Shown one piece after another: positions 12 to 54,749 of a stretch of DNA of 64,000 bases (the stretch's first letter is position 1; each line of letters begins with the position of its first letter). The notes below the pieces were generated by a model. The model made no database searches and was not told where the DNA came from. It saw only the letters and a list, made by a program, of their open reading frames with translations. A program made the position numbers and the translations under genes. The stretch lies in the sequence record MK250021.1; one strand, given 5' to 3'.

Positions 12-380
12 TTATCTTACCCATTCATTAATATAACCATATTCATTACGTGCATTCTCTGGATAGCGGTTATCAACATCATGTTTCCAACTAAGAAATT
101 CTTCTTCTGTAAAATAACTGTTAGTATACCAGAAATTACAATCACTACCATCACTTGTCTGATGATGATACCTTATCAAATTTGTTCTAGTATTCCATGA
201 TAATGTATCATTATAATTGTATACAGTTTTACCTGTTTTTATATATGATAAAAGTTCTTCCCATGATTTAAAACCATGCTCTTTATAATGTTGTAGTTCT
301 TTCATCTTTTTTTCTTTAAGACGAAAGTTTTCCTCTTCATCAAACTTATTTTTTAACTCACTTAAAACATGATTATCCAT
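12..380 (-). CDS. hypothetical protein (122 aa)
   Basis: Open frame ATG to TAA, downstream of a TGTATCTTTG promoter motif; no recognisable motif. Confidence 0.7.
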   Translation of the reverse strand: MDNHVLSELKNKFDEEENFRLKEKKMKELQHYKEHGFKSWEELLSYIKTGKTVYNYNDTLSWNTRTNLIRYHHQTSDGSDCNFWYTNSYFTEEEFLSWKHDVDNRYPENARNEYGYINEWVR

Positions 381-382
381 AA

Positions 383-565
383 TTACTCAATTGTTTTAGA
401 TTCAACAACAAGACCATTGCCTATACTAGTTGCAACACGAGATGCATATTCAATATTATTGTAAACTCCATAATACCAATAACCATCTGGACATTCTCTT
501 ACAACAGTATAAGGATATTCAGTTTTATACTCGTTAAACTTATTTGGTAAATTATTTACAACCAT
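383..565 (-). CDS. hypothetical protein (60 aa)
   Basis: Short ORF, first gene after promoter motif at 611-622, 2 nt from the next gene. Confidence 0.65.
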   Translation of the reverse strand: MVVNNLPNKFNEYKTEYPYTVVRECPDGYWYYGVYNNIEYASRVATSIGNGLVVESKTIE

Positions 566-610
566 AATTTTTATATTTTAAATTATTATTTTTAATTGTT
601 ATTTTTATAA

Positions 611-7177: not shown

Positions 7178-7196
7178 TTATTAAAATGAATAAATT

Positions 7197-7751
7197 ATGA
7201 CTATTATATTTTCAAATATGTTAGATCCAGATTGTCAAGTTATTAGAAATGCATGGCAAGGATTAGATAATATACATCTTATAGAAATAACACCAGATAT
7301 AGATGGTTATGAAGATATAGTTAATAATGCAATTATATCAGAAGATGATACTATATTATTTTTGGGACATGGTACAGCAAAAGGTTTATTATTTCCAAAT
7401 TTTAATAAAGAAAAATATTTATTACATGAATTTAATATAAATTTAGTTCATGCAAAAAATATAATATGTTGTTGGTGTTATGCATCAGATTTTGTAATTA
7501 ATAATAACTTACATAATACATTCTCAACATCTATGTTTATTTCTAATACAAATGAAGCAAATGATAATGGTATAGATAATTATACACAAAAACAAATTAA
7601 TATAAATGGTGAGAGATTTTATAGTAATATAAATCAATTATTGAAATATAATATACCATTGAATGAATGGGTAATGCAATTGGGTGCAAAGATGGATATT
7701 GAAAATGAAATAGATACATTTAATAGACAAGGATTATTTTATAAAGAATAA
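7197..7751 (+). CDS. hypothetical protein, possible caspase/gingipain-like (clan CD) fold
   Basis: Hydrophobic strand + GHG (ILFLGHG) and downstream strand + Cys (IICCWCYAS). Confidence 0.4.
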   Translation: MTIIFSNMLDPDCQVIRNAWQGLDNIHLIEITPDIDGYEDIVNNAIISEDDTILFLGHGTAKGLLFPNFNKEKYLLHEFNINLVHAKNIICCWCYASDFVINNNLHNTFSTSMFISNTNEANDNGIDNYTQKQININGERFYSNINQLLKYNIPLNEWVMQLGAKMDIENEIDTFNRQGLFYKE

Positions 7752-7786
7752 AAAAGGAAGATACAATAATAAGTATCTTCCTTTTT
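7751..7786. terminator. bidirectional intrinsic terminator
   Basis: AAAAAGGAAGATAC / GTATCTTCCTTTTT between convergent genes. Confidence 0.75.
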
Positions 7787-7791
7787 ATATA

Positions 7792-35328: not shown

Positions 35329-36393
35329 ATGAATAAATTAATTAAGAAATTAATGGAGGGATTATTTGATGATTTTGATGATGAAATTTTATCAAATTCA
35401 GATAATTCAAATAATGTATCTCAATAGATAATTGAAACGGAAGATAAACCTAAAATTAAAGAATGGTTGTTAGATAATATTATTTGTAAATATGGAACAC
35501 CATTTAAATGTGATGAAGGTAATGATATTGAATATACATTTGAATCAGATGGATTACATTGTAATTTAAAATTTAATGTACAAGATGCAAAATTTATGAA
35601 TTCTATTCCAGATTATGTTAAAATTAATAAAATAACTTGTAATACTGTAGAATTTGCAGACTTTATTAATTTACCTAAAGAAATAGATGGGACATTAAAT
35701 ATAAAAGGATGTAAGGAAAAAGATTTAAATGTACAATTACCAGAGAAATTAGGTGTATTATCGCTTATTAATTGTAAAATACGTTCATTGAAAGGATTAA
35801 GTAATACATGTAAATCAATAGAGCATCTTTGTATAGAAAATTGTAATATGTTTACTTCATTTAATGGGATTCCAGATAATGTTGGATTTATATAGTTAAT
35901 TAAATGTAAGAAAATAGTAGATTTAGAAGGAATTCCAGATACAGTAGAGAGAATTGTATTAGTTTCATTACCTTCATTTGAAAGTTTAAAAGGATGTCCA
36001 AATAAATTAAGTAATGGATTGTATATATAGGAGTGTCCATATTTAACCACATTAGCTTATTGTCCATCATTAATAATGGACCAATGTGAAATACATGATT
36101 GTATGTTATATCAGTTAGATATGAAAAATACAAGAATTTGTGGTACATTTAAATTAAGTAATAATAATTTATCAGATTTAGAAAATGGACCAAAACAGAT
36201 AGACGGATCATATATAGTTTCGGAACCGTATTTAGCAAAATTTAAAGCTAATGAAACTATTATGACAAATGCGTATAATAATGCGGAATTTATATATCAA
36301 GTTAGGAAAAAATATTTTAAAGGAAATAAAAATGACATGCCATAGATGAACAATGGTGTAAAAATTGTATGTCAATATTTAGAAGATCTCTAA
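35329..36393 (+). CDS. leucine-rich-repeat-like protein with LME-GLFDD leader (354 aa, 4 TAG)
   Basis: Repeats SLKGLSN / SFNGIPD / DLEGIPD / SLKGCPN continue across TAG; joins track ORFs 35467..35895 and 36076..36345. Confidence 0.8.
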
Positions 36394-36461
36394 TTAAAAA
36401 TAAAAAGAGAATAACTAACACAATATAGTTATTCTCTTTTACTTTTATTATATATTATTAA

Positions 36462-37262
36462 TTACTTACCGTAATGGATATAATCAATAAGAGCATTTGT
36501 ATCAAGATTTGACTCAACTGTTTCTTGATCATTAACTTCCTTAAGAGCAGCGATTACAGCCTTAAGCAACTTACTACGACGAGCAAGCAAATCAGCACGT
36601 TGCTTTTGTGACCACTCACCAGTAAACTTCTGCAATGTATAATCACCGATTTCAACTGTCTTCTTACGTTGAACAACCGCCGCACGATAATTAGCTGGAA
36701 TATTAGCAGGATCAATATTAGGATCCTTCAAAATCTCTTCTGTTGTCTCTGTAGTACGGGAAACACCCTTTACAAGTTCATTCTCAAGAATCTCTCGACC
36801 ATTATATTCTGTATTATGTGTTGGTGTCCAAATCTCTGAATCTGAATAAACAGGGATTCTCTCATACATTGTTACCAACTCTTTAGAAGTAAGAATACTC
36901 TTAAGACGCATAAGGTCCAATGCAGTTAGTTCACCGAATGAATGACCATCAACTACAAGCTCTACCTTCTTTGCACCGAGAGAATTCGTAGCTTCAACTG
37001 AAAATACCTCATTAAGATAATTAGTAGCAATATCCTTAAACCAATTCAACTGTTCTGAAACTGTAGTCTGTACTGCTGTTACACCCTTCTTTGTAGGATC
37101 CTCTGGATAACCCTCACGAGGAACATAAGTCTTCTTCTCACCACGGAATGCGCCTTGTGAATTCTTAAAATAAGATGCATACTCATTAATTTCCTTTGCA
37201 TACACTGATGCAGAATGGTCGACCTTCGCAAGTACGACATTCATCTTTTCTACTTTTGCCAT
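36462..37262 (-). CDS. conserved-looking hypothetical protein (266 aa), probably highly expressed
   Basis: Higher-GC, capsid-like codon usage; FRGEKKTYVP...GxWS...R; no confident family call. Confidence 0.8.
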   Translation of the reverse strand: MAKVEKMNVVLAKVDHSASVYAKEINEYASYFKNSQGAFRGEKKTYVPREGYPEDPTKKGVTAVQTTVSEQLNWFKDIATNYLNEVFSVEATNSLGAKKVELVVDGHSFGELTALDLMRLKSILTSKELVTMYERIPVYSDSEIWTPTHNTEYNGREILENELVKGVSRTTETTEEILKDPNIDPANIPANYRAAVVQRKKTVEIGDYTLQKFTGEWSQKQRADLLARRSKLLKAVIAALKEVNDQETVESNLDTNALIDYIHYGK

Positions 37263-37405
37263 AATTTATTAAAATTAAATGTTAATGTTAAATCTAAATT
37301 TTTTAATTACTTAATGTATATGATAAGTATAAGAAAAAGTCTATTATAAATAGAATAAAATATAAAATATTAAAGTAAATAATGATTAATAACAAATAGA
37401 ATTTA

Positions 37406-38539
37406 ATGGATGATATATTAGATGCAATATCAAAAGGATTAAAAGAAAGTTTAAATATAGAAGAGCAAATCCATCCATATAATGGTGTTTTAACGGATAT
37501 AAGAGATTACGAATCTGTATTTCATTCTCCAAATTTTGAATTATATAAATTAAATGAAAAATATCATGAAGTATGTATATCTCAATAGATATTAAATAAT
37601 ATTATAAAAATAATTAAAGATAATAAAAATAATTTAGGAAAAGACATATATACAAATTATTGCTTTAAAATATATAAAGTTAATAATCATAAAACATATA
37701 AAATATATAAATCAATTAATATTAATAAAGATCACCCTATATATGTAAATTTATATTCTAATAAAAGTAATGTATATGGTAAAACAGAAAATAGACTTAT
37801 ATCTAATGATATAAATTTAGATAATGATCATATAAGAATATATATAAATGTTTATTATATTAATATGGAAAAATTTATATATTCTGTATTAAAACATGAA
37901 TTAACACATGTTGTTGAAATGTATTCTGCTAAAAAGTTTAATAATATTAATAATTTAAAAAATACTATAGGAATTGATAAGGATAATGATATAATGTTAG
38001 ATATAAATCCATTAGCAAAAAATATGTTAAATAGGATGGTTTACTTATTTTCTAATACTGAACATAATGCACACATAAATGGTTTAGCTGAATTTATCAA
38101 TAAATTATCACCAACAGAAATAAAAAAATATACAAAATATATACAACATGAAGATGATGATGAAAATATTAAAGTAATTAATAATATAAATAATCCTATA
38201 TATAATTTTATGAGAAATTATGATGATTTAGATATATTAACAAATTATCAGGAATTTGAAGATTATATGTTTGATTTAAAAAGTTATTTAGAAAACAATG
38301 ATTTATTACCAATTTTTTATTTAGGTTATTTATTATAGAAACATCATTTAATATATAACAAAACTTAGATAAATTGGGATTTTATTAAAAATTATATGGA
38401 TAAAAAATATAAAAATTATAGTAAATATCATAATATTGCTGTATAGATAGTAAGTTTCTATGATTATAAAATAAAACAATATAGAGAAGACATATATAAA
38501 ATAATATATAAGAAATTTAAAGAAAAGAAAATTATTTAA
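37406..38539 (+). CDS. putative Zn metalloprotease (HExxH; 377 aa, 4 TAG)
   Basis: VLKHELTHVVE followed by FSNTEHNAH (gluzincin-like third ligand); frame continuous through TAG. Confidence 0.7.
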
Positions 38540-38541
38540 TC

Positions 38542-39066
38542 ATGATAACAGTAAATAAATCAATAGATATAAATAAGGAATCATATCCTAAATGTCCATA
38601 TACAAATGGCTTTTGTGAACCGAATATATTATACAATGATTACTCTATTATTAAAAAAGATAAATGTTTAACATGTGAACATTGGAGAACTAATTACGAT
38701 TATATTCTTAATAAATCTTTAGAGTCTGCAAAGAAAAATAAGAAATCAAATTATAATCTTATTGTTAATGAGGTAAACAGAGACGGTGGAAAATATATAA
38801 AGTTTGATAGCGATGACATAGGGTTTCTTATATGTGCGACGTCTACAATAGAAGATTATTATTATGTTTACATGGATAAAGATAAAAATATAAAGATGTC
38901 TTCATGCGTAGGTGGATATGAAGTTATAAAGTCTTCAGAAATACCACAGAATCTCTCTGTATTGAGTTATATTCGTCAACATGATAAATTATATATAAAA
39001 GAAATTATAACGCGATACATAAAGAATTTGAAGTATGATAAGGTAATTACGAAAATATTTTACTAA
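38542..39066 (+). CDS. hypothetical protein (174 aa)
   Basis: Open frame; N-terminal Cys cluster. Confidence 0.7.
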   Translation: MITVNKSIDINKESYPKCPYTNGFCEPNILYNDYSIIKKDKCLTCEHWRTNYDYILNKSLESAKKNKKSNYNLIVNEVNRDGGKYIKFDSDDIGFLICATSTIEDYYYVYMDKDKNIKMSSCVGGYEVIKSSEIPQNLSVLSYIRQHDKLYIKEIITRYIKNLKYDKVITKIFY

Positions 39067-39116
39067 AAACAAATTAACCATTATTTTATATAACATATAA
39101 ACATTTAATATAGTTT

Positions 39117-39464
39117 ATGTCTAATATAGAAAAAGGAAGAAAAGAAATTATAGATAGATATTCTCCAGATATTACAAACAGTATGACTCATGTTTTGGAA
39201 AATATCTATAATGCTGGATGGCATGCAGGCAGGAAAGCAGAACGAGAGAAATGGAGTAAATGCGAATATCTCATGATTGCTCCTGAAAAAATGGAGAAGA
39301 TTAAACAAATATGTGAAAATCCACCATGTAAAAATTGTAAATGTAAAACAATGGATAGACTAACAGGATGTTTAGCAAATCCTCAAACATGTGAAGAATA
39401 TCAAGAATATTCTTTAGTTTGTGAATTAATTAAATATTTTAAAACATGTGCATATAAATCATAA
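39117..39464 (+). CDS. hypothetical Cys-rich protein (115 aa)
   Basis: Open frame; CKNCKC...C...C. Confidence 0.7.
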   Translation: MSNIEKGRKEIIDRYSPDITNSMTHVLENIYNAGWHAGRKAEREKWSKCEYLMIAPEKMEKIKQICENPPCKNCKCKTMDRLTGCLANPQTCEEYQEYSLVCELIKYFKTCAYKS

Positions 39465-39532
39465 GACTTTATTTTGGAATTTCATTATAATATGTAAAAT
39501 AATAAACTAATAAATTTTACATAATAATTAAT

Positions 39533-39700
39533 ATGAAACAGATTAAAACTAATCAATTCAATTCCGATAAAGTACAGGTAAAGATGCCTTGGACTGTTTA
39601 TGATAACTATAATATAAAGAAAGATCCAAAGGTAACAATAGGTGTTCCTATTAATGAAAATTTGAAACTAATAGATACTGATAAAACAATTTGGTATTAA
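39533..39700 (+). CDS. small hypothetical protein (55 aa)
   Basis: ATG to TAA followed by a terminator hairpin; below the track cut-off. Confidence 0.5.
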   Translation: MKQIKTNQFNSDKVQVKMPWTVYDNYNIKKDPKVTIGVPINENLKLIDTDKTIWY

Positions 39701-39799
39701 TAGATATAAAAAAGTCTGAATTATATATGATTATAATTCAGACTTTTTATTTTATTTATATATGTAAAATAAATAATATAATAATTTATTATATTAAAA

Positions 39800-41425
39800 A
39801 TGAATCAAAAATTATATAGAAGTTTAATTGAAAGTATAGGTATTGCTATTAAGAAATCAATAAATGAAATGGCAAGACTTTCTGTATAGAGAACCATAGA
39901 TAAGAAACTTTGGTTAAGCGTAGCATCTACATGTTCTAGAAATAAATCAACAGAAGCAGAGAATATTAAACCAGGTAAAGGAGATAAAGATAATCTTCTC
40001 AATAGATATGTTGCAGCTCTTATTATAATGAGAAAACCATGTCCATAGTCTGAAGATGATATTGATGATATTAAAACATTTAAATTGGTAGGACATAAGT
40101 ATTTAGAATTAGGTGGTACTATTGAAGAAATTCAAGCTTTATATAATAAAAATACAGGAAAACCTTCTACTAATAATACATCTACAAAAAAGCAAGTTGA
40201 AGCAAAAGATAATACGGAAAACAATAAAGGTTTTGATAATGCAGTAGAATAGAAAACATCTGGAGGCGGATTATTCGACGATGATGATATATTTGGAGAC
40301 GATGAAGTTAATAGAGCATTAACATCTGACTTACAAAAAAAGATTTTAGATCTACCAAAAGAAACATCATTAGAAAATGTATTAATGTAGAGTATAGGTA
40401 TTACAAAACCACGTGGATGGAAATATATCAAACATACAAATGAAGAATATGATAAATTTGTATTTAATATGAGTGGTACAAGCATAACACCAGAATACAC
40501 ATGGAATTATCCTAAATATTTGAAAGATTTCATAAACCTTATAAACAGTAAAGGATGGAAATTATATAAGGTTGAAGCACCGTCTTTATTCGGTTATTAT
40601 AGATTTGAAAATATGACACCTGCATAGGTAAAACAATAGATACAATACGCATGTGAATCAAGATATAAACTTGGTAGAGACTTAACAGAAACTATAGATA
40701 ACCGCTTTAAAGAATATGAAGATTTTATAAATAAACGTAGAAAGGACATATAGACATTCGATAATGATTTTGTAAAACAAATGTTTGAATCTGATGAGAA
40801 TGTATATAGAGTGTTTTTATCGCCTGATGAAGGACTTATGCTGACATGTACAAGACCTATACCAGTAAATGTATCATATGGTAATTCAAATATTTCAAAA
40901 AATTATTATACTAATTATACAGAATGGATATGGACTGTAACATTTACAGGAAATGTAAATGATTATGATGAAAAAGATAAAACAGATATAAAAAAATTAA
41001 AGGAAGATAATAAGAAATATAATAAGCGCAAAAAAATATTTAGAACATTATTAGATAAACGATGTGGCTTGTCAGGATTTAAGTGGACAGTGTTTAATGA
41101 TGGTAATGGTTATCCTATAATGGTTAAGATATGTAGTAAAGGATCATGTAAGATTACATATGATAACTTTACAAAAAAATATTATAATCCTTATACAAGT
41201 AAATCTAGTTATTATTATATACCTACAGATGATAAGACATTTCCTAATTCATTTAAGGAGGCTGTTTAGAATAAAGAACATTGGGGTGTATCATTGGTGA
41301 AATTAGTATGTTGTAATAATGACGGGAAATATGGTCATTCCCTATATGGTGGAAGTGATGATGAAGCATATATGATTATAATGCCTACATATTATGGTAA
41401 AGCCATGATTGATTCTCTATTATAA
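39800..41425 (+). CDS. chimeric hypothetical protein (541 aa, 8 TAG)
   Basis: N-terminal ~110 aa homologous to 7792..9252; middle LFDDDDIFGDD...KPRGWKY...SKGW similar to 16743..17867; includes track ORF 40781..41269. Confidence 0.85.
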
Positions 41426-41474
41426 TGAATACAAATAAATATATATGAATTAAAATATAATTTTTAATAATAAA

Positions 41475-41891
41475 ATGAAAGTTAGTGAAAAGAAGAAATT
41501 ATATGAGTCTATCATGATGAATGTATCAAAGATAGTTAAGAAAAAATTAAATGAATATGGCGATGGTATCGAGCAGGATGTTGATCCAGATGATGATATT
41601 ACTGTATATGTTCCTTTGATTGGTTGTGAATGCACTGTTATTCCTTGTTATGATGAGGAAACAGGTGGAACATTCTACGAGGTTCATGATGATAATGATG
41701 AATATGTATGTGAGATTCATGATGATGTGGATACATCAGATGAAGACGCATTGGTAGATGCTATTGAGGACAATTACCAATGGGAATCAAAATCAGGTGA
41801 TTATGAAAATGTTGATCCATTAGGTCCTGATGATTCTGATGTAGATGATGAGTTCGATACTTATGAAGAAGACGAAGATTATGATGTTTAA
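41475..41891 (+). CDS. small acidic protein with LYESIM...LNE leader (138 aa)
   Basis: Basic leader followed by a D/E-rich body. Confidence 0.75.
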   Translation: MKVSEKKKLYESIMMNVSKIVKKKLNEYGDGIEQDVDPDDDITVYVPLIGCECTVIPCYDEETGGTFYEVHDDNDEYVCEIHDDVDTSDEDALVDAIEDNYQWESKSGDYENVDPLGPDDSDVDDEFDTYEEDEDYDV

Positions 41892-41894
41892 TAA

Positions 41895-42248
41895 ATGAAA
41901 AGAATTATTAATATAAGACCATTATCAGAAAATACAATAAGGAAATCTTTTGGTACTTCATTAGAAGATAAACTGAGAGAATTAAGAGATGAAGTAAAGG
42001 ATAGTAGATTACTTGAAGATACTTTAGTATTTCAGATAGGTAGGGAAGTATATACAGATAATGGTACAAGATATAAATTATTGGGAGGTCATCTATCATA
42101 CCAGGAAATGGGATTAACATAGATGGACCAACAGTTATATAGTAATATTGTTTCAGGTAAAACTGATGTTGATACAGTGCTATATAACTGGAAGAATAAA
42201 AAGGTTAAAAAATTGAACTTTTCTTCAAGAAAAACATAGAAAAAGTAA
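41895..42248 (+). CDS. hypothetical protein (117 aa, 2 TAG)
   Basis: Track ORF 41895..42122 ends in TAG; the frame continues to TAA 42248. Confidence 0.65.
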
Positions 42249-42251
42249 AAT

Positions 42252-42294
42252 AAAATGGTGAATATTTAATTTTATGTTAAATATTCACCATTTT
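42252..42294. terminator. bidirectional intrinsic terminator
   Basis: AAAATGGTGAATATTTAA / TTAAATATTCACCATTTT between convergent genes. Confidence 0.75.
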
Positions 42295-42296
42295 TA

Positions 42297-42738
42297 TTAA
42301 TATGTAGATAATTCTTGTGTAAATGTACTTAATGCATCATCTATAGATGAAAACTCTCCAAATGATACTTCTGTATCAGGATCAGAAAATACTTCAAATT
42401 CGAAATCTATTTTATCAACAGGGCCAACGGCTAATGTATATGTTCCATTATTATTCTATTGAATAGTTAAATGACTATTTTCTCCTCCACAAAAATCATC
42501 GAATTTCTATTGTAAATTATAATTATTTGCAAATATTCTCAATAATGATTCTGGTTCTCTATGTGTACCTTTTGAACCTCTCATAATTCTAACTTCAGAT
42601 GAATTAAAATATGATAAAATTATTTTCTTTAAATTATTTAATAGGTATATTAGAGTTTTCATTAAGCGTTCTTTTTACAGTTTTTGAAACAGATTTCATT
42701 ATAGATTCATAAAGTGATTTCTTTTGATTTTTATTCAT
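42297..42738 (-). pseudogene. leader-bearing gene with +1 frame offset (or a 34-aa leader ORF overlapping a 121-aa ORF)
   Basis: ATG 42738 gives MNKNQKKSLYESIMKSVSKTVKRTLNENSNIPIK then TAA; the +1 frame (own ATG at 42662) runs to TAA 42297 through 2 TAG. Confidence 0.5.
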
Positions 42739-42821
42739 AGTAATTATTTATATTTTAATTTTCATTTATATATTTATACTGAAAATATAATTATAAAAAT
42801 CCTATGTCTTTATTTACATAA

Positions 42822-43259
42822 TCAAAATAGTGCTTCACATTTATTCTCTTTTATCGGGCACCAATTCTCAAAATCCCATTTGAAAAAATCAGTACATATA
42901 ATATTATGATTTATAATATCTGTTATTTTATCTGTAATTTCAAAATTATATTTTTTTATTAGTTTTATTAATCTTTCTTTTAATTCTTCTGTATTATCAT
43001 CCATTAATTCTGTTGCATAACATGTATTTATTGCATTTTCTACATCTGAAATATTATTACAATTTTTTAATCTTTGTTCAACGACATATAAAAATATATT
43101 ACCTATACCTGCGCAAGGGTCTAAAAAAGTTTTAGAGAAATCTGTAAATACTTCTGGTGTTTCTTCACATAATTTTTCAACTATATGTATTGGCGTAAAA
43201 TCTTCTTGTGTTATATGATGTCGTTCTTTTCGTTTTTGATTTATATCTTGCTATAACAT
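42822..43259 (-). CDS. stand-alone SAM-binding half of a DNA amino-methyltransferase (145 aa, TAG at codon 3)
   Basis: QEDFTPIHIV (motif X), TFLDPCAGIGN (motif I), YATEL (motif II), IICTDFF (motif III); no NPPY. Confidence 0.8.
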
Positions 43260-43282
43260 TATAAATATTATTAATTTCTAAT

Positions 43283-43290
43283 TATTTATA
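43283..43290 (-). promoter_or_regulatory. T4-like late promoter motif TATAAATA
   Basis: Exact T4 late consensus 24 nt upstream of the ATG at 43259; the AT-rich background weakens significance. Confidence 0.4.
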
Positions 43291-43315
43291 TTAGAGAATA
43301 TTCATATTGTTTATT

Positions 43316-43387
43316 TGTAAGGGTTATGGTGATATGATGAAGGATCATATTTATAGAGAAGGAATTACAAAAACAAATAATAATACT
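43316..43387 (+). repeat. outer inverted repeat, left arm (72 bp)
   Basis: Perfect reverse complement of 44330..44401. Confidence 0.9.
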
Positions 43388-43544
43388 CACTACTGTTTTT
43401 TTGCAGATATATGTGCAATAACAGGTCATGGCAATGAAAAAGCAATGTTATCTAATACTGCATATAAAGTATGTAAATATGGCGAATATTTAAATAGATA
43501 TACTGAAACACTTTGTCGATTAAGTAATACAGATACTTATAAAG

Positions 43545-43620
43545 TATATGGTACTAAAGATGAATTAGAAAATTGGAAATATTTTGTTTTTAATAATAAA
43601 TTACCATTATTTCTTAATAT
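43545..43620 (+). repeat. inner inverted repeat, left arm (76 bp)
   Basis: Perfect reverse complement of 44016..44091. Confidence 0.9.
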
Positions 43621-43825
43621 CGTGTTGACAATAAATCAGCATAATAATTCAAAAGACTATGTACCATGGTTTACTAATAAAAAATACACAGATAGTGAAA
43701 TATATAAAATATTAAATATTAATAATATTGAGCAATTATTAATTAACAAAATAATAATTAAGTTTGAAAGAAATAATACATGGTTTAAAAGATATATAAT
43801 AGGTATGTGATCTATTATATATCTT

Positions 43826-45172
43826 TTATTTTCCGCATATATATCGTTTAAACCAATTTGAATTTCTTTCGAATTTTTTAATTATATTATCCATAAATAA
43901 GATTTCATCATTATTAATATTTAATATTTTATATATTTCACTATCTGTGTATTGTTTATTTACAATCCATGGCATATATTGTTTAACAACATTATTTTGA
44001 TTAATAATTAAACATATATTAAGAAATAATGGTAATTTATTATTAAAAACAAAATATTTCCAATTTTCTAATTCATCTTTAGTACCATATAAACAATCAG
44101 CTATTTTATTAGTTTGATGTTTACCTTTATCATATTTAAAGGGTTTAATGTTATTTATATTATTCATATAATAATGAAAACAAGGTGATGTATATGAAGT
44201 AATAAATGAACCATATTTATGATTACAAAAATTTGATTCAGCTTCAAATTTTCCACCAACTTGTGAAGATTCAATACCACATAAGCTTCCACCTGTTCCT
44301 CCAAGTATTTCTGGATATTTACAGTAATAAGTATTATTATTTGTTTTTGTAATTCCTTCTCTATAAATATGATCCTTCATCATATCACCATAACCCTTAC
44401 ACTTATTTAAAATACTTTGTATAATATCATAATTACCGATAAGATTACAATCATTTATATTATCAACAATTTGTTTATCACCACAATTAATAAATTCAAT
44501 ATTATTAAATTCTTGTGAATTATCTATAAAAGTTATTGAACATGGAACATATTGTGAAATATTAAATGATTTATTATAATTTTCAATTATAATTTTTTTA
44601 ACATGGTTTTTAATACGATTTTTTAAGGGAATATACCATTTTTTATTATTTGGTATATCTTTTCTTAAATTAATAAGCCATGTAGATGGCTCAATAATTG
44701 TCATTTTCCCATTATTATTTAATATATCTAATCCCTTATTAAAAAATTCTAAATGTAAATTTGTATTTCTATTTGGTCCAACATAAGGTGGATTCTGAAT
44801 AATATAATCAAATTTAGGCATATTTTTTATATTTAATTTTATATAATTAAATATATTTTCTGCATCATATATATTTGTATATTTTAAATAATATATATTT
44901 TTACATATTTTACTATATTCTTTATATGTTTTTAGCACAAATATATTAAACATTTTATTAATTAAATTATCAATATAATTATAATCAATATCATTAAATG
45001 TTAAAAATACAATTTTACCATTATTATCATATAAATATTTTTTTAATGTAATAGTTTGTTCAATAAATTCAACAGAATCTATTGTTCCAAATAAATTATT
45101 AATTTTATGTAAAATACATAAACATGTTTTTACATTATTAAAATTTGATAATTCAGAAAATATTTTAATCAT
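43826..45172 (-). CDS. DNA adenine methyltransferase catalytic + target-recognition subunit (Eco57I-like; 448 aa)
   Basis: FDYIIQNPPY (motif IV), LHLEF, GKMTIIEPSTW; no clear motif I. Confidence 0.85.
   Translation of the reverse strand: MIKIFSELSNFNNVKTCLCILHKINNLFGTIDSVEFIEQTITLKKYLYDNNGKIVFLTFNDIDYNYIDNLINKMFNIFVLKTYKEYSKICKNIYYLKYTNIYDAENIFNYIKLNIKNMPKFDYIIQNPPYVGPNRNTNLHLEFFNKGLDILNNNGKMTIIEPSTWLINLRKDIPNNKKWYIPLKNRIKNHVKKIIIENYNKSFNISQYVPCSITFIDNSQEFNNIEFINCGDKQIVDNINDCNLIGNYDIIQSILNKCKGYGDMMKDHIYREGITKTNNNTYYCKYPEILGGTGGSLCGIESSQVGGKFEAESNFCNHKYGSFITSYTSPCFHYYMNNINNIKPFKYDKGKHQTNKIADCLYGTKDELENWKYFVFNNKLPLFLNICLIINQNNVVKQYMPWIVNKQYTDSEIYKILNINNDEILFMDNIIKKFERNSNWFKRYICGK
44016..44091 (-). 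repeat. inner inverted repeat, right arm (76 bp)
   Basis: Matches 43545..43620. Confidence 0.9.
44330..44401 (-). repeat. outer inverted repeat, right arm (72 bp)
   Basis: Matches 43316..43387. Confidence 0.9.
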
Positions 45173-45183
45173 AGTTATATTAT

Positions 45184-45918
45184 TTATACTTTATATTTTA
45201 TAATATTATCTATTGTTTGTTTAAATTCTTCCCAGAAATCATAATCATTTATATAATCATTTATAGTATTTCCATCGATAATTATGAGGTTTTCATATAA
45301 AGAATTATTTTCAAATGCTCTTTTATATTCATTATAATAAGCGGATGTAAATAATATTAATGTTTTGTCTTTTGTATTTTCTGGTGTAATAGGTTTAATA
45401 AATCCATTTTTTGTACCTTGTGCTAATAATTTATCCATTATATCTGCATGAATATCAAATTTTTTGGATGTTCTAAATTTTACTTGTATTACTCCATTTT
45501 TATTTTCTCCTAAACCTCTTCTATTTAATAAACATACAGCATCTACTCCATAATCTTTATAACTTTCTGGTGGTAAACATATATATTTAAATATATATGT
45601 TTCTACAGTATCTTTATCTTTTACGTGAATACTTATACTTTTAAAATAATTTAAAAATATAATACAGAATAATTCAAAAATATATCCTTTAAATTGTTCT
45701 TGCTCATCAATTATATTATTTTTTATTAATATATTATTTGTATATTCTGTAAAATCATCTATTGTATTAAATGATGTTATATCAGATAAATATTTTATAT
45801 TTAATATTATATTTAATATTTTTCGAGGTATACTTGTACTTTTATTTCTATACGTACTTTTATCTCTCCATCTTTTCAAAAAATTATCAAATGCATATAA
45901 TTCTTTAATATTAATCAT
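45184..45918 (-). CDS. PD-(D/E)XK restriction endonuclease-like subunit (Mrr-like; 244 aa)
   Basis: GYIFELFC...DYGVDAV...GVIQVKFR. Confidence 0.75.
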   Translation of the reverse strand: MINIKELYAFDNFLKRWRDKSTYRNKSTSIPRKILNIILNIKYLSDITSFNTIDDFTEYTNNILIKNNIIDEQEQFKGYIFELFCIIFLNYFKSISIHVKDKDTVETYIFKYICLPPESYKDYGVDAVCLLNRRGLGENKNGVIQVKFRTSKKFDIHADIMDKLLAQGTKNGFIKPITPENTKDKTLILFTSAYYNEYKRAFENNSLYENLIIIDGNTINDYINDYDFWEEFKQTIDNIIKYKV

Positions 45919-47576
45919 ATATCTATATTATTCTGTTTAAGAACTTCTTTAATTACATTAAGTCTATCTGTTTCATTAAATAAATTTAATGTATTTATAT
46001 TTGTTGATAAAGTAGCAAAATTACACATTTTATATATACTATTTAAATTTATATATCCACCATTTATTTTTAATTCTTTAACAACAGGAATAATTCTATT
46101 TTTAAGTTCTTCTTGCAAATTTAGTTTTAATTCATCTATACGTTGTTTAATTTCTATGATTGGCGATTTTTCCTTATAATCTGTTGTATTATAATTATCA
46201 TATCGTTTTAATGGATTTTTTGGATGTGAAATATTATCAGATATATTATCATATAAAATATTATCTATACCATAATATTCAACAATTGTACTTGATATAT
46301 TTTTATTATATTCATCATTACCATTAGATACTATATATACATTAGCGAATTTTTTAATTCTATCATTATATGATTTCCCTCTTTCTCCTGAGTTTGTTCT
46401 CAAGCAACGACCAATTATTTGTATAATTCTATTTTTTGAATCGCTATCACCATTTGTATTATTGACTATAATGCAATCAGATATTGATTTAATATCAATC
46501 CCTTGAATAAGTTTTCGACAATGAAATATTATACAATTATCATTATATGAATCTACTTTATTACAAAAATCATTAATTTCGTAATCATCATCAGATGTAT
46601 TTTTAAAACATTTATAATATTTTGAACATTTATTGTATAATTCTGTTGCTTGCTGTCTACTAAAACATGTAACTAATAATTTATTATTTTTTGTATTTTT
46701 TGATTTAATAGCATCATTCATACAGGCAATTATAATTTTATCAGTAATAATACCATTTGAAGTGATATTAAATTTTACATATGGTTTTATTATAATATTA
46801 TCTTTAATTGCATTATCTGCAGATATATTTACAATACGTTCATCTTCTGGAACGTTTATTTTACCTGATAATTTATTTTTATTTATAATATTATTAAATA
46901 GTTTTACAAAAATACTTGGTGTTGCAGAAAAACCATATAATTTATAACTATTTTTTACTAATTTATCAAAATTTATATTATTTGAAAATAAATTTGTAGT
47001 ATTATCTATTACAGTATGACATTCATCAATATATGTAATTAAATCTACTTTCTTTTTATTAATTTTTACATTATCAATAAATTTATATAATGATTTATTA
47101 CATGATGAAACTAAAGCAATATCATAATCGCTATTTTCAAAATTATCTAATACAGTCTTAGACGATTTTGAATTATTATATAATTGATAAATTTCTATAT
47201 TATTATTAATATTATCATTTACAGGTTTTTCATATATTCTTGTTTCATCTGATGAATTTAATATTAATAATAATTTATAATTATTTAATACATTATTACA
47301 TTTTCCTAATACATTTAAAAAATCAGTAAATGTTTGGACATTTAAATTTAATATGTGTGAACATATACAAATAATAAGTTTCTTGGATGCCTTTTTATTT
47401 TGTATATTGTATATACAATCATCAAATATATATCCAGATTTCCCATATCCAGTAGGCATAACAACTGTACCAAAATTCCTACCAGTAGATGCAATAATAT
47501 CAATTTTTCTTAATCCATTATTAAATGAATCTATATACCATTGCATTTTATTGTCTATATTATTTGTTGTATTCAT
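45915..47576 (-). CDS. SF2 DExH helicase/translocase (Type III/ISP Res-like; 553 aa)
   Basis: MPTGYGKS, IDECH, FSATP, KLIQGID, QIIGRCLR. Confidence 0.85.
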   Translation of the reverse strand: MNTTNNIDNKMQWYIDSFNNGLRKIDIIASTGRNFGTVVMPTGYGKSGYIFDDCIYNIQNKKASKKLIICICSHILNLNVQTFTDFLNVLGKCNNVLNNYKLLLILNSSDETRIYEKPVNDNINNNIEIYQLYNNSKSSKTVLDNFENSDYDIALVSSCNKSLYKFIDNVKINKKKVDLITYIDECHTVIDNTTNLFSNNINFDKLVKNSYKLYGFSATPSIFVKLFNNIINKNKLSGKINVPEDERIVNISADNAIKDNIIIKPYVKFNITSNGIITDKIIIACMNDAIKSKNTKNNKLLVTCFSRQQATELYNKCSKYYKCFKNTSDDDYEINDFCNKVDSYNDNCIIFHCRKLIQGIDIKSISDCIIVNNTNGDSDSKNRIIQIIGRCLRTNSGERGKSYNDRIKKFANVYIVSNGNDEYNKNISSTIVEYYGIDNILYDNISDNISHPKNPLKRYDNYNTTDYKEKSPIIEIKQRIDELKLNLQEELKNRIIPVVKELKINGGYINLNSIYKMCNFATLSTNINTLNLFNETDRLNVIKEVLKQNNIDI

Positions 47577-47619
47577 AATCCTTTATATTTAATTGTTTAT
47601 TATTCATTTATTAATAATG

Positions 47620-47629
47620 CAAAGATACA
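47620..47629 (-). promoter_or_regulatory. Bacteroidota-type -7 promoter element
   Basis: TGTATCTTTG upstream of the helicase. Confidence 0.65.
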
Positions 47630-47685
47630 TATTATTTTCTAAAATAAAAAATGATAGATTAGAAAATCTATCATTTTAATATTAT

Positions 47686-48153
47686 TTAAGAAAGAAATAC
47701 TTTATAAATATCTTTCGCTAATTTATTTCTATCTTCTTCATTATTAATAAAGTTAGTCATGATATAATCTATCAATCCTTCATAACTATGAAAATTAACA
47801 CTTCTAATTCTCATAATTTCTTTTACTTGCTCTTCATTCAGATATTCATCCATAATCCAATCAAACAATGCTGGTATATCATCAGGTTTCATAAAATTAA
47901 TAATGATATTAAAATAACTCGCATCTAACTCAATAGCTCGGTTACAAAATGAACTGTACTTACCGTAATTTCCATTTTTGAAATCTTCTTCACTCAACGG
48001 GCCTTCTCCGGTAAGTCTTCTGGAAACTACATATCGCCTAATTGCCTTGTTCATATCCTTTATAGACTTACTCATTCTCAAACCATCATCATTCTTATCG
48101 ATGAGTTTCTGAACTCTATCAAAATCTTTTTTCTCTACATTAGTGTAAATCAT
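47686..48153 (-). CDS. hypothetical protein (155 aa)
   Basis: Open frame; weak resemblance (RYV....L...P.SE.D) to the shared domain of 9252/39800. Confidence 0.7.
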   Translation of the reverse strand: MIYTNVEKKDFDRVQKLIDKNDDGLRMSKSIKDMNKAIRRYVVSRRLTGEGPLSEEDFKNGNYGKYSSFCNRAIELDASYFNIIINFMKPDDIPALFDWIMDEYLNEEQVKEIMRIRSVNFHSYEGLIDYIMTNFINNEEDRNKLAKDIYKVFLS

Positions 48154-48319
48154 AAACTAATCAATATTTAATAAATTAAACAAAAAAGAATTAGCGTATA
48201 AACATTCCTATTATTTATTAATGAAAAAAACGTTATATCACTAATTATACATTATCTTATATTATGTAATAATTAAAAAGTTCAATATATAAATAAAGAA
48301 AATATTATTATTTTTAATA

Positions 48320-49255
48320 ATGATAAAAAAGAAATATCCTAATTTACATGGTGCATGTATAGACAATTTTCATAAATTATATTCTGCTGATTTATATGAA
48401 TAGTATGGTATATTAAATTATAATGATTAGTCATTTCGTTTAAAAATTGAAACAATAGCAACCGGAATATATGATATGATAAAGACTGAAAAACAACCGT
48501 ATTATAAAGAATTTTATGTAAAAAACGTATTTAATTTTATATGGAAATTAAATATTGTAGTTGATTCCACATTTAATTTTACATCGGTATTTACACCTGA
48601 AGTTGAATTTAAATATAATTATTAGAATCATATAGTTGAACACGCAGTGATATTTATAAATCCGTTAAAATTTACTAATATAGATTCTATTGTACCAGCA
48701 ATATATCATGAGATAAAACATATATTTGATCACACAATTAAAATTACAAATGATATACAATAGAAAGAAGTATTATTTAGAGATTATTTAATACAAACAT
48801 ATGAATTATAGGATGAACCAGAAATAAGTTTTACAACATATAATAAAAATCTTATACAAAATAATGAAACGCCAATTATGTATTATTTAAGTTCATTTAT
48901 AGATTATGTTGCATATTCAGAATATACGGCATATTTAGAAAATATAGATGATAGTTATAAACATGATTTAAACAATATAAGAAGAATAAAATTTTTAAAA
49001 AGTAAGTATACATATACACAAATTAAAAAATTTATATATTTAAATATACAATCTGGTAATTTTTTATTAATATATTATAATATTGAAAAATATATTAATG
49101 ATATATTAATGATGAATAATTTAAATATAATAAATCAGAAATATAAATAGAATTTTAATGATATATACGGTGTTAATACTATACAACAAGTATTGAAGAT
49201 TTATTTAAAAAGAATACAAAAAGTAAAAATACGTGCAAAAAAAACTATTTTATAA
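48320..49255 (+). pseudogene. HExxH Zn metalloprotease-like gene interrupted by two TGA codons
   Basis: IYHEIKHIF and YSEYTAYLE lie in one TAG-containing frame, but TGA occurs at 48803 and 48815; architecture resembles 37406..38539. Confidence 0.55.
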
Positions 49256-53051: not shown

Positions 53052-54749
53052 ATGGAATTAAATTTAGATGAATATAGAAAAGATTTCAATATAAAAAGAT
53101 TTAATAATTTATTACGATACCATGAAGATTTATTAGATACATTAAAAAAGAAAACATCATTTTTAGATGAACATAATCCGGAGAAATCTGAACGTGTATA
53201 TTGTTGGTATAATAATATAACAGAAATTCAAAAATGTCCTCATTGTGGTAAATCTAGAAAATTCCATAAATTTCCTGTTGGTTATTTTCCTACATGTGGT
53301 ACAAAGGAATGTAGAGCAAAATCAGTTGCATATGGAAATAAATATCACCATGACTTTAAAGAAATTCAGAAAAAGATGAGAGAAACATATGCGAAAAATC
53401 ATAATGGAATTACACATAATATGCAAGATCCTGAATTTAAGAAAAAATTCTTTGAAGATTTTAAGAAGAAACATAATGGTGCATCATGTGGTGTTCAAAC
53501 AGAATTAGCAAATAAGAATAGAGAAAAATCAACATTAGAAAAATATGGTGTTAAATGTGCATTAGAATCAAAGGAAGTTCGTAATAAAATATATGAAAAA
53601 TATGGGAATAATGCACATAAAGTAATTACTGATAAATCAGCAAAAGCTAGAAAAATAAATTCATTAAATGATATTATTAAAAAAATATCAGAAATGAATT
53701 ATACATATATTTCTAATAATAATGATACATTTCAAATTAAATGTAATAAATGTGGTCATATAAATGAAATTAATAGACAAGCAATAAATTATTATTACAG
53801 AAATATAAAGCATATATATTGCAATAAATGTGAATATAAAGAATTAATGTTTAGGAGTAATTTTGAAAAAGATGTTGTAAATGAAATTGGTAAATTAATA
53901 AAAGATACAAAATATTCTATATTAACTAATAAACATATTTATAATGGTAAGGAACATTATGAAGTAGATATATTAATTCCTGAATTAAATTTAGCAATAG
54001 ATTGTAATGGTTTATATTGGCATTCTGAATTACAAAAATCAGATAATTATTATCATTATAAAAAGAAAGAATTTATAGAAAAATTAGGTTATTCTTTAAT
54101 TTNNNNNNNNNNNNNNNNNNNNNATGATATTAATAAGAAAGAAATTATATTAAGTCGTTTATCTAGTAAATTAAAATTAAATAAACATGTATATGCAAGA
54201 AAATGTATAATTAAAGAATTAACTCCTAAATTATATAGAGATTTTTGTAATGAAAATCATTTACATGGATCTGTTAATGCATCTATAAAAGTTGGATTAT
54301 ATTATAATAATGAATTAGTTGAAGTAATAGGATTAGGTAAATCTCGAAACTTAATAGGACATAATAAAGACACTGTTTCATATGAGCTATTACGTTTATG
54401 TACAAAAAAATATATTAATGTTATTGGTGGTTTTTCTAAATTAATGAAATATATTATTACTAATTTTAATATATCATCTATATATAGTTATGCTGATTTA
54501 TCATGGATTGATTTAAAAGGATCATCATATATTAATAGTGGATTTATTATAGATAAAATAATAGATAATGAATATTGGTGGGTAGTTAATAATATAAGAG
54601 AAAATCGTTTGAATTATACTAAAAATAAATTAGTATCATTAGGATATGATAAGAATTTAACAGAAATAGAAATTATGCATTCATTAAAACATTATAGAGT
54701 ATTCGGCCCTGGTAATTTAAAATTTATATATAAAAAGAAAAGTCTCTAA
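53052..54749 (+). CDS. Hef-like putative homing endonuclease, tandem paralog (565 aa; spans the N gap)
   Basis: EVDILIPELNLAIDCNGLYWHS; VYARK...NHLHG...GGFSKL...YSYAD; KYGV-like repeat. Confidence 0.75.
   Translation: MELNLDEYRKDFNIKRFNNLLRYHEDLLDTLKKKTSFLDEHNPEKSERVYCWYNNITEIQKCPHCGKSRKFHKFPVGYFPTCGTKECRAKSVAYGNKYHHDFKEIQKKMRETYAKNHNGITHNMQDPEFKKKFFEDFKKKHNGASCGVQTELANKNREKSTLEKYGVKCALESKEVRNKIYEKYGNNAHKVITDKSAKARKINSLNDIIKKISEMNYTYISNNNDTFQIKCNKCGHINEINRQAINYYYRNIKHIYCNKCEYKELMFRSNFEKDVVNEIGKLIKDTKYSILTNKHIYNGKEHYEVDILIPELNLAIDCNGLYWHSELQKSDNYYHYKKKEFIEKLGYSLIXXXXXXXXDINKKEIILSRLSSKLKLNKHVYARKCIIKELTPKLYRDFCNENHLHGSVNASIKVGLYYNNELVEVIGLGKSRNLIGHNKDTVSYELLRLCTKKYINVIGGFSKLMKYIITNFNISSIYSYADLSWIDLKGSSYINSGFIIDKIIDNEYWWVVNNIRENRLNYTKNKLVSLGYDKNLTEIEIMHSLKHYRVFGPGNLKFIYKKKSL
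54103..54123. other. assembly gap (21 N)
   Basis: Run of N inside 53052..54749; the paralog suggests a WEDD-type motif falls here. Confidence 0.95.

Follow-up and report, generated by a model that had tools for sequence, protein, structure and literature searches.

Background

Switching of restriction-modification specificity by DNA inversion is regarded as a bacterial bet-hedging device against phages. Gene-altering programmed inversions have been described for bacterial Type II/IIG, BREX PglX and DISARM DrmMI methyltransferases, in which an expressed Eco57I-domain or N6A methyltransferase gene faces a shorter, convergent silent 3' fragment, the two share inverted repeats and inversion swaps the C-terminal specificity part in frame (Milman, Yelin & Kishony 2023, PMC9881135). 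Helicase genes are neighbours of these systems, 'Eco57I ... domain-containing protein' is enriched among the inversion targets with an odds ratio of 16, and most described hsdS, Type II and BREX inversions in bacteria have a recombinase gene enriched nearby (PMC9881135). In the Type I hsdS invertons and shufflons of S. pneumoniae (SpnD39III), Bacteroides fragilis and Mycoplasma pulmonis (PMC7672463, PMC7641763, PMC7394358), specificity switches combinatorially by inversion between an expressed copy and silent copies that share several inverted repeats, the target-recognition modules being separated by conserved scaffold. The switched element in these is a separate S subunit with two TRDs, usually with a linked tyrosine or serine invertase.

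The phage invertible segments (Mu G/Gin, P1 C/Cin) and the R64 shufflon are mobile-element systems that diversify the C-terminal end of a specificity protein (tail fibres or the pilus adhesin) by DNA inversion, using short (19-34 bp) sites and a dedicated adjacent recombinase (Gin, Cin, Rci), with the R64 shufflon doing so with nested or multiple segments. Type ISP restriction-modification enzymes (LlaGI, LlaBIII; PDB 4xqk) are single polypeptides of about 1,500 aa with the domain order nuclease-helicase-methyltransferase-TRD, while the monomeric gamma-class methyltransferases CamA, M.BseCI and M.TaqI combine a Rossmann methyltransferase domain carrying NPPY with a C-terminal DNA-recognition domain.

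The locus examined here lies in a 64,000-nucleotide stretch of sequence record MK250021.1 (hereafter referred to as the window), which matches the start of the 550-kb genome of the Prevotella megaphage Lak-B2. A preliminary description based on the sequence alone had proposed that a methyltransferase gene and an alternative 3' part, sharing two perfect inverted-repeat (IR) pairs, form an invertible target-recognition cassette with four possible alleles and no adjacent recombinase, by which the phage population varies its methylation or restriction specificity. Text searches for invertons in huge phages or megaphages found nothing, and the Lak papers examined (PMC8346664; bioRxiv 10.1101/356790) and the Jug-phage paper (PMC12880540), as far as they were searched for these terms, do not mention inversion or methylation at this locus. 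The nearest viral record among those available for comparison, a 158-kb fragment (G001), lacks the locus. Its organisation, its states in related phages and the predicted folds of its products are described below.

Organisation of the locus

The features of the locus are as follows, with positions given for the window.

45915..47576 (-), first gene of the operon, an SF2 helicase-like ATPase of 553 aa with no in-frame TAG
45184..45918 (-), Mrr-like PD-(D/E)xK nuclease of 244 aa
43826..45172 (-), methyltransferase gene encoding 448 aa
44402..45172 (-), constant part of the methyltransferase gene (residues 1-257), a Rossmann methyltransferase domain with NPPY at residues 127-130
44330..44401 (-), outer IR, arm inside the expressed gene, encoding KGYGDMMKDHIY...NNT
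44092..44329 (-), expressed variable segment V-long (238 bp, about 80 aa, with a Gly-rich loop)
44016..44091 (-), middle IR, arm inside the expressed gene, encoding YGTKDELENWKYFVFNNKLPLFLNI
43826..44015 (-), expressed tail (type A), consisting of T1 (43954-44015), the inner IR arm (43910-43953) and T2 plus stop (43826-43909)
43307..43810 (+), open frame of 167 codons
43316..43810 (+), silent cassette with no stop codons, consisting of the outer IR arm (43316-43387), V-short (43388-43544), the middle IR arm (43545-43620), T1-B (43621-43682), the inner IR arm (43683-43726) and T2-B plus stop (43727-43810)
43316..44401 (no strand), largest invertible segment (1086 bp, outer IR arms included)
42822..43259 (-), small methyltransferase-like protein of 145 aa with motifs X, I, II and III only (FTP, LDPCAGIGN, TELM, DFFKWD), in which TAG at codon 3 is read as Q
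42891..48171 (no strand), accessory island that holds the whole system

The observation made in the preliminary description proved to be real. Both of its IR pairs are exact, with 72 of 72 bases complementary between 43316-43387 and 44330-44401 and 76 of 76 between 43545-43620 and 44016-44091, and a third perfect pair of 44 bp, which it had missed, lies in the tails (43683-43726 / 43910-43953). Thus, there are three nested pairs, so that up to eight alleles rather than four are possible. These three are the only perfect IRs of 28 bp or more with arms within 6 kb in the whole window. In 200 first-order Markov simulations of the region 42000-47000, the longest IR averaged 16 bp and never exceeded 22 bp, against 76 bp observed. 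The reading frames are also as had been described, the methyltransferase gene and the open frame of the cassette converging 15 bp apart. The segments between the repeats (238 and 157 bp) are about 50% identical at the DNA level, i.e. unrelated, while the tails are 70-72% identical.

The variable segment falls in a region that is hypervariable across the whole family, with no invariant or nearly invariant column between residues 295 and 320 of the protein P0001 (P numbers denote proteins of the families compared), against frequent ones in the flanking blocks. A promoter and terminator scan was uninformative, returning 72 promoter-like sites against 80 expected in shuffles.

The accessory island is present only in Lak-B2, B7 and B8. 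It is replaced by a different 3.07-kb methyltransferase island in Lak-B1 and Lak-B3, and Lak-B6 and Lak-B9 are 99.98-100% identical to Lak-B1 across that island.

Orientation states in related genomes

A comparison of the locus across related genomes had been named beforehand as a test, a single fixed orientation being the outcome that would have spoken against a switch, and more than one orientation was found. In the sister genome Lak-B7, the segment 43316-44401 is 100.000% identical but inverted, whereas the flanks are collinear and 99.95% and 99.92% identical, with only 2 mismatches on each side. The 421-aa enzyme that had been predicted for inversion at the outer pair is present in Lak-B7 as an intact ORF, the silent cassette of the window being the expressed 3' end of the gene in that genome. 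Near-identical contigs in two other Lak-like lineages (assemblies of relatives are denoted by L numbers) also differ in state. Between L015 and L017, a 553-bp segment bounded by the pair homologous to the middle IR is 100% identical when inverted, with only 2 mismatches in about 4950 bp once it is re-inverted. Between L008 and L019, the variable segments are exchanged while the tails stay in place, which equals outer plus middle inversion. In addition, the protein P0007 of L040 carries an A1-IR3-B2 junction, i.e. a junction at the third repeat.

The architecture is conserved, since the same layout is found in a relative whose methyltransferase is only 58% identical, and all silent cassettes are free of stop codons. 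The repeats evolve in concert, as IR1, IR2 and IR3 are 100% identical within the window but 81-93% identical between lineages. The type A and type B tails are older than the lineage split, with orthologous tails being 78-94% identical and paralogous tails 68-72%.

An alternative view is that the silent cassette is a relic of a partial duplication rather than part of a programmed switch, and that the different states are rare, essentially fixed rearrangements or products of recombination between co-infecting phages. Each assembly shows one state. A search for sequencing runs with two stretches of the window (42800-45600 and 45184-45918) listed none, so that orientations were not counted from reads, coexistence of both orientations within one clonal population and any rate of switching are unproven, and the data fit recurrent but possibly infrequent flips. 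Local silent cassettes were also sought in non-Lak relatives with near-identical N-terminal but different C-terminal parts (L037-L039) and none was found, so that allelic replacement by inter-phage recombination does occur in this family. However, this view is considered unlikely in the light of the persistence of the architecture down to 58% protein identity, the intact silent frames, the homogenisation of the repeats within genomes and the difference in orientation between genomes that differ by only about 0.05% in flanking sequence. Moreover, three of the four outer/middle combinations, plus a third-repeat junction, are seen in one lineage.

The possibility that the inverted segment was mis-oriented by assemblers because of the repeats was also examined. 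Three assemblies (L009, L013 and L040) carry the same module in both copies, which simple reciprocal inversion does not produce and which implies gene conversion or chimeric assembly of mixed populations. Nevertheless, the repeats (44-86 bp) are shorter than the k-mers named in several contig names (k141, k127) and shorter than typical reads, so that each junction is spanned by real sequence. Independent assemblies from different pipelines and studies give consistent, in-frame states, and the Lak-B genomes were manually curated (bioRxiv 10.1101/356790). An assembly artefact is therefore regarded as very unlikely.

Predicted products of the operon

The methyltransferase is the third gene of an operon with the helicase-like ATPase and the Mrr-like nuclease, followed by the small methyltransferase-like protein, a context that the preliminary description had not included. 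The first gene product matches Pfam ResIII (E 1.5e-7), DEAD and Helicase_C, and is conserved upstream of the methyltransferase in L008, L009, L035, L036 and L038. The 244-aa protein gave nothing in Pfam and PHROGs, but has the invariant residues E82, D126 and Q145-x-K147. Its AF2 model (pLDDT 79) has as its best PDB match the nuclease domain of the Type ISP enzyme LlaBIII (Z 8.4, 136 aa aligned), a score only modestly above background, followed by AspBHI and MspJI. Its Atlas neighbours carry Mrr_cat_2, some being fused to ResIII helicases, and its homologue P0128 is named an Mrr domain protein in UniRef. PADLOC gave no defence-system assignment for the helicase or the nuclease.

The methyltransferase has the features of a gamma-class N6-adenine enzyme (Eco57I/TaqI-like) in its motif IV, fold and C-terminal domain, though not in its motif I. 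Pfam Eco57I (PF07669) scores 27.1 bits against a cut-off of 25.3. The stretch FDYIIQNPPY at residues 121-130, with motif IV on strand beta-4 of a class-I Rossmann fold, is nearly invariant in 84 relatives. The AF2 model (pLDDT 89, pTM 0.89, with a dip to 68-75 in the variable segment) superposes over residues 1-246 on HsdM-type gamma N6A methyltransferases with Z 14 (rmsd 3.2 over 196 aa). A structural model placing the variable segment outside the DNA-contacting domain had been named as an outcome that would count against the interpretation. The model instead aligns over residues 1-419 with CamA (37..577), M.BseCI and M.TaqI (28..409), including their C-terminal DNA-recognition domains (VIA scores of Z 12.5-13.9 over 276-322 aligned residues), and with the methyltransferase-TRD part of LlaBIII (Z 12.2), and the variable part lies in this C-terminal domain, although residue-level DNA contacts of the variable segment were not mapped. 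Sequence identity to CamA, M.BseCI and M.TaqI is only 11-18%.

The canonical AdoMet-binding motif I (D/E-P-x-x-G-x-G) is absent from the N-terminal Rossmann half of the 448-aa protein. There are no invariant or nearly invariant residues before D122 in the family, and the sequence after the modelled strand beta-1 reads HKINNLFGT. The canonical LDPCAGIGN is found on the separate 145-aa protein, which is why it is unclear which polypeptide binds AdoMet. The 145-aa protein matches PHROG 21201 'DNA methyltransferase' (E 1.6e-16) and the N-terminal regions of PADLOC MTase_II, and lies directly downstream of the methyltransferase gene in relatives without a cassette. BLASTP of the N-terminal 130 aa of the methyltransferase against it showed no similarity, and PDB sequence searches with the 145-aa protein and with the family profile gave nothing significant beyond weak TaqI motif IV-VI alignments. 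Complex prediction for the 448-aa and 145-aa proteins gave no answer (score 0.00, controls not run), which is no evidence either way.

Recombination route

No recombinase domain appears in any ORF of the island 42891-48171, in agreement with the preliminary description. The whole Lak-B7 record has no tyrosine recombinase (PF00589), which also excludes an Rci enzyme of the R64 type encoded there, and no IS110/Piv-type enzyme. It has one RecA-like gene (48 bits) and one serine recombinase of the resolvase family (PF00239, 85 bits) about 79 kb away on the circular map. Extensive recent homologous recombination among baboon Lak phages is reported (bioRxiv 10.1101/356790), and RecA/RadA is a Lak core protein (PMC8346664), making a homologous recombination route plausible.

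A site-specific invertase acting in trans at short core sites hidden inside the long repeats, such as the single serine recombinase of the phage or a Prevotella master invertase of the Mpi/Tsr type, cannot be excluded but is considered unlikely. The phage enzyme has a 58-aa N-terminal extension followed by the catalytic domain at residues 59-192 of 201, with no HTH_7 hit, and thus lacks the Hin/Gin layout of an N-terminal catalytic domain followed by a C-terminal HTH. It is followed by a 449-aa ORF without a Pfam or PHROG hit, an arrangement that resembles IS607 TnpA/TnpB, although this resemblance was not examined. No short motif shared by the three repeat pairs was found, on inspection by eye only. 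The repeats are 44-86 bp, perfect, and sit on whatever protein blocks are conserved, which is what homology-driven exchange predicts.

Interpretation and significance

The evidence is best explained, with fairly good confidence, by a combinatorial, inversion-driven cassette switch for the C-terminal DNA-recognition domain of a phage-encoded gamma-class N6-adenine DNA methyltransferase. In this view, the expressed gene and a promoterless, stop-free spare 3' cassette lie tail to tail and share three nested blocks of identical sequence that coincide with the conserved scaffold of the domain. Recombination within the outer, middle or inner block would flip everything between the two arms and exchange the variable segment plus the whole tail, the tail, or only the last ~29 residues, respectively, always in frame, so that up to eight proteins could arise from one locus. 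As the operon has the domain content of Type ISP enzymes split into separate polypeptides, the swapped domain most likely sets the specificity of both methylation and restriction. The flips are believed to be made by general homologous recombination between the perfect repeats, using the RecA-like protein of the phage or host RecA during the recombination-rich replication of these phages, and the same process is believed to keep the repeats identical.

The repeats, the frames, the inverted states in near-identical genomes, the concerted evolution of the repeats and the folds of the methyltransferase and the nuclease are demonstrated by the present analysis, whereas the change of specificity, the activity of restriction, the recombination mechanism and the rate of switching are inferences from it. 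The earlier interpretation of an invertible target-recognition cassette is thus supported in its structural part by natural variants, while its functional consequence, a different methylated or restricted motif, is untested, no methylome or biochemical data being in existence. It also has to be amended with respect to the number of repeat pairs, the operon and island context and the bacterial precedents cited above.

A further-reaching reading, possible but held only tentatively, is that a virulent megaphage carries a complete, split Type ISP-like restriction-modification system whose shared methylation and cleavage specificity would be reshuffled among up to eight alleles by recombinase-independent, homology-driven inversions at three nested coding repeats. 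The phage population would then continuously diversify the 'self' mark on its DNA and the weapon it turns on host or rival phage DNA, a phase-variable epigenetic warfare encoded by a virus rather than by a cell.

The logic of inversion-driven switching is found here in a phage, on a replaceable island of a 550-kb genome, with natural isolates caught in several states. If the alleles methylate or cut different motifs, Lak populations would be epigenetically heterogeneous, and the outcome of co-infection and superinfection between Lak strains, as well as their sensitivity to the many Prevotella restriction-modification systems, could change from burst to burst, which metagenomic 'consensus' genomes would hide. 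The locus also offers a natural, compact set of chimeric recognition domains on one scaffold (at least five V types and two tail types) for studying how CamA/TaqI-like domains read DNA, and may be an example of programmed variation that needs no dedicated invertase.

Comparison with described systems

Among the closest known systems are the programmed inversions of bacterial Type II/IIG, BREX and DISARM methyltransferases, with which the locus shares the convergent silent 3' fragment, the shared inverted repeats, the in-frame exchange of the C-terminal part and the neighbouring helicase gene. It differs from these in residing in a lytic-type 550-kb phage genome instead of a bacterial chromosome, in having three nested repeat pairs that give combinatorial modules rather than a single swap, in having no linked recombinase, and in its much smaller methyltransferase (448 aa) with partners that are separate polypeptides. 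The hsdS invertons and shufflons share the combinatorial exchange with silent copies across several inverted repeats, but no HsdS-like ORF is present here and the inverted part is the 3' end of the methyltransferase gene itself, the TRD being its C-terminal domain.

The domain set of Type ISP enzymes, i.e. Mrr-like nuclease, SF2 helicase-like ATPase, gamma N6A methyltransferase and C-terminal TRD, is present in full, but in three genes in the order helicase, nuclease, methyltransferase-TRD, plus a fourth small methyltransferase-like gene. No activity has been shown, ATP-dependent translocation and cleavage of unmodified DNA not having been assayed here. In comparison with the Mu, P1 and R64 systems, the target is a DNA methyltransferase, the repeats are long perfect coding blocks instead of short sites such as the 19-bp sfx sites of Rci, and no invertase is linked. 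With CamA, M.BseCI and M.TaqI the protein shares the overall two-domain fold, but it differs in its non-canonical motif I, in being encoded in a helicase/nuclease operon and in being followed by a separate gene that carries only motifs X-I-II-III.

Inverted repeats and reading frames

The expressed methyltransferase gene and a convergent frame share perfect inverted repeats, and the features considered are as follows.

43826..45172 (-), expressed ORF encoding 448 aa
43307..43810 (+), convergent frame, open for 167 codons
43316-43387 / 44330-44401, outer inverted-repeat pair, 72 of 72 bases
43545-43620 / 44016-44091, middle inverted-repeat pair, 76 of 76 bases
43683-43726 / 43910-43953, third perfect pair, 44 bp, in the tails

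The first two pairs had been named in the preliminary description and were confirmed to be exact, while the third was identified in the present analysis. These three are the only perfect inverted repeats of 28 bp or more with arms within 6 kb in the entire 64-kb window, and in 200 first-order Markov simulations of the 5-kb region the longest inverted repeat never exceeded 22 bp. At the protein level, the repeats encode three blocks, KGYGDMMKDHIY...NNT, YGTKDELENWKYFVFNNKLPLFLNI and YTDSEIYKILNINN. Between these blocks lie an unrelated variable segment V (80 vs 53 aa, about 50% DNA identity) and two diverged tail pieces, T1 and T2 (70-72% identity). A run of 21 N at 54103-54123 is far from the locus.

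Comparison with sister genomes

The locus is that of Prevotella phage Lak-B2 (MK250021.1; 100% identical, at the same coordinates) and is also 100% identical to Lak-B8. The flanks in Lak-B7 (MK250026.1) are collinear and 99.95% and 99.92% identical, whereas the 1086-bp stretch corresponding to window 43316-44401 is 100.000% identical in the opposite orientation. Lak-B7 therefore expresses the constant part fused to what is the silent cassette in the window, as an intact 421-aa ORF, which is exactly the product that the preliminary description had predicted, and the long cassette is silent in Lak-B7. No sequencing reads were examined, and the coexistence of orientations in one population and the switching rate were thus not assessed.

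Cassette states in other lineages

A 416-kb IMG/VR contig (L008), whose methyltransferase is 58% identical, has the same layout: helicase, a ~250-aa gene, methyltransferase, convergent silent cassette and a 145-aa gene. Its perfect repeats are 86 and 68 bp. A protein search found 532 relatives, among which were sets with near-identical N-terminal parts and different C-terminal parts. Examination of their contigs revealed the states listed below, where W and K denote V and A and B denote the tail.

Cassette states in the contigs of relatives
L010, L011, L012: expressed W+A, silent K+B
L015, L016: expressed K+A, silent W+B
L017: expressed K+B, silent W+A

L015 and L017 differ by inversion of a 553-bp segment bounded by the middle repeat; the segment is 100% identical when inverted and only 2 mismatches remain in about 4950 bp once it is re-inverted. 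L008 and another contig, L019, differ by exchange of V alone, which equals outer plus middle inversion. Protein P0007, on contig L040, carries tail piece A1 joined through the third repeat to tail piece B2. All three repeat pairs have therefore been used, and up to 2^3 = 8 alleles are possible, rather than the four proposed from two pairs in the preliminary description. Three assemblies carry the same V (or T1) module in both the expressed and the silent copy (L009 5755-6073 / 6493-6811; L013 3303-3621 / 4041-4359; L040 3653-4147), giving 319-bp perfect inverted repeats. Reciprocal inversion cannot produce this, and it points either to gene conversion or to chimeric assembly of a mixed-orientation population. 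At least five V types circulate in Lak-like lineages, two per genome.

Non-Lak relatives also occur as pairs with 95-100% identical catalytic cores but 62-71% identical C-terminal domains (proteins P0013/P0021, P0054/P0066, P0024/P0039 and P0038/P0046), yet their loci (L037-L039) have no local silent cassette. In those phages the recognition domains seem to be exchanged by another route, such as inter-phage recombination or distant cassettes.

Concerted evolution of the repeats

Each repeat block is 100% identical between the two copies within the window genome but only 81-93% identical between lineages. The tail pieces show the opposite pattern, with paralogues being 68-72% identical and orthologues 78-94% identical. 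The A and B cassettes therefore pre-date the lineage splits, while the repeats are continually homogenised, which is the signature of ongoing exchange at the repeats.

Predicted fold of the methyltransferase

Pfam places residues 59-170 in Eco57I (PF07669) at 27.1 bits against a cut-off of 25.3, and NPPY lies at residues 127-130. An AlphaFold2 model built on 84 relatives is confident (pLDDT 89, pTM 0.89), with CamA, M.BseCI, Type I M subunits and M.TaqI as the best matches in Foldseek. In VIA-align, residues 1-246 superpose on HsdM-type catalytic domains (Z 14, rmsd 3.2 Å over 196 aa), and residues 1-419 superpose on CamA, M.BseCI and M.TaqI including their C-terminal DNA-recognition domains (Z 12.5-13.9), and on the methyltransferase-TRD part of the Type ISP enzyme LlaBIII (Z 12.2). 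The invertible part (residues ~258-448) is thus the recognition domain, although V was not mapped onto DNA contacts at residue level. V is the family-wide hypervariable, partly Gly-rich stretch, flanked by near-invariant scaffold.

Genomic context

Upstream in the same operon lie a 553-aa SF2 helicase-like protein (ResIII, DEAD, Helicase_C) and a 244-aa protein. The latter has invariant residues E82, D126 and Q145-x-K147, and its model (pLDDT 79) best matches the Mrr-like nuclease domain of LlaBIII (Z 8.4), followed by AspBHI and MspJI. Its Atlas neighbours carry Mrr_cat_2, some being fused to ResIII helicases, and UniRef names a 51%-identical homologue an Mrr domain protein. Helicase, Mrr-like nuclease and gamma methyltransferase-TRD together make up the domain set of Type ISP enzymes, but as separate genes in a different order. 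The helicase, nuclease and methyltransferase genes (43826-47576) have no in-frame TAG, whereas neighbouring genes (35329-42662 and 48320-49255) need TAG read as a sense codon (for example, 39800-41425 has 8 in-frame TAG codons and 37382-38539 has 5). This may mean that the operon can be translated before recoding sets in, i.e. is expressed early.

Downstream of the silent cassette lies a 145-aa gene (42822-43259, -), which encodes only methyltransferase motifs X, I, II and III (FTP, LDPCAGIGN, TELM, DFFKWD) and ends about where strand beta-4 and motif IV would begin. It has TAG at codon 3, where relatives have E. The expressed 448-aa protein lacks a canonical motif I, which sits on the 145-aa protein instead; a complex prediction gave no answer. 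Many family members are ~330 aa and start exactly at M-x-FDYIIQNPPY (for example, P0013 and P0064), and the family therefore looks like a methyltransferase split between motifs III and IV, with the genes in swapped order. In relatives without a cassette the small gene follows the methyltransferase gene immediately. The silent cassette is therefore an insertion between two ancestrally adjacent genes, and is so far specific to Lak-like lineages. The 660-kb Lak relative Wendovervirus sonii (L035, 659,950 bp; 3664-7832) has the four-gene operon of helicase, Mrr-like nuclease, methyltransferase and small methyltransferase-like protein with no silent cassette, which is probably the ancestral arrangement.

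The whole system lies on an accessory island (42891-48171) found only in Lak-B2, B7 and B8, while Lak-B1, B3, B6 and B9 carry another methyltransferase island at the same spot. This alternative island encodes a different 450-aa Eco57I-like methyltransferase (28% identity) with its own convergent, stop-free silent C-terminal cassette, sharing one ~88-bp inverted repeat that is only 96.6% identical (5672-5759 / 6908-6995 in L022, the stretch from Lak-B1, MK250020.1; the same in Lak-B3, B6 and B9). All four genomes have the same orientation, and this could be a second, less active or inactive inverton. Lak-B4 (MK250023.1, 40000-49000; L032) has yet another arrangement, in which only parts of the Lak-B1 island align, with about 3 kb of extra sequence. 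The site thus behaves as a hypervariable methyltransferase / restriction-modification island among sister genomes.

Possible mechanism of inversion

No recombinase lies on the island, in agreement with the preliminary description, which had noted none adjacent. The complete Lak-B7 record contains no tyrosine recombinase, no IS110/Piv-type enzyme, one RecA-like gene and a single serine recombinase about 79 kb away. The serine recombinase (514158-517559 of MK250026.1, L024; ORF 1327-1932) is 201 aa with 5 in-frame TAG codons, and its resolvase domain at residues 59-192 is C-terminal, which is not the Hin/Gin layout. It is followed by a 449-aa ORF (1982-3331) with 11 TAG codons and no Pfam or PHROG hit; the layout resembles IS607 TnpA+TnpB, a comparison that was not pursued by analysis.

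The Lak discovery paper reports extensive recent homologous recombination among exactly these baboon phages (bioRxiv 10.1101/356790), and RecA/RadA is a Lak core protein (PMC8346664). The repeats are long, perfect and positioned on conserved coding blocks. Therefore, homology-driven inversion is favoured here as an inference, although a trans-acting invertase remains possible, and such inversion would also explain the homogenisation of the repeats.

Comparison with known systems

The observation of an invertible cassette in the phage methyltransferase gene holds. Its interpretation is well supported structurally, whereas the proposed variation of methylation or restriction specificity in the phage population is an inference, as no methylation or cleavage data exist. 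The Lak and huge-phage literature, as far as it could be searched, does not mention the system. Inversion-driven switching of specificity is classical for Type I hsdS, and was recently shown to be common for bacterial Type II/IIG, BREX PglX and DISARM methyltransferases, with Eco57I-domain proteins strongly enriched among the targets (PMC9881135). The present system is new in that the carrier is a megaphage, with the cassette on a replaceable island, the design has three nested repeats and is combinatorial, there is no linked recombinase, and the operon context is a split Type ISP-like system.
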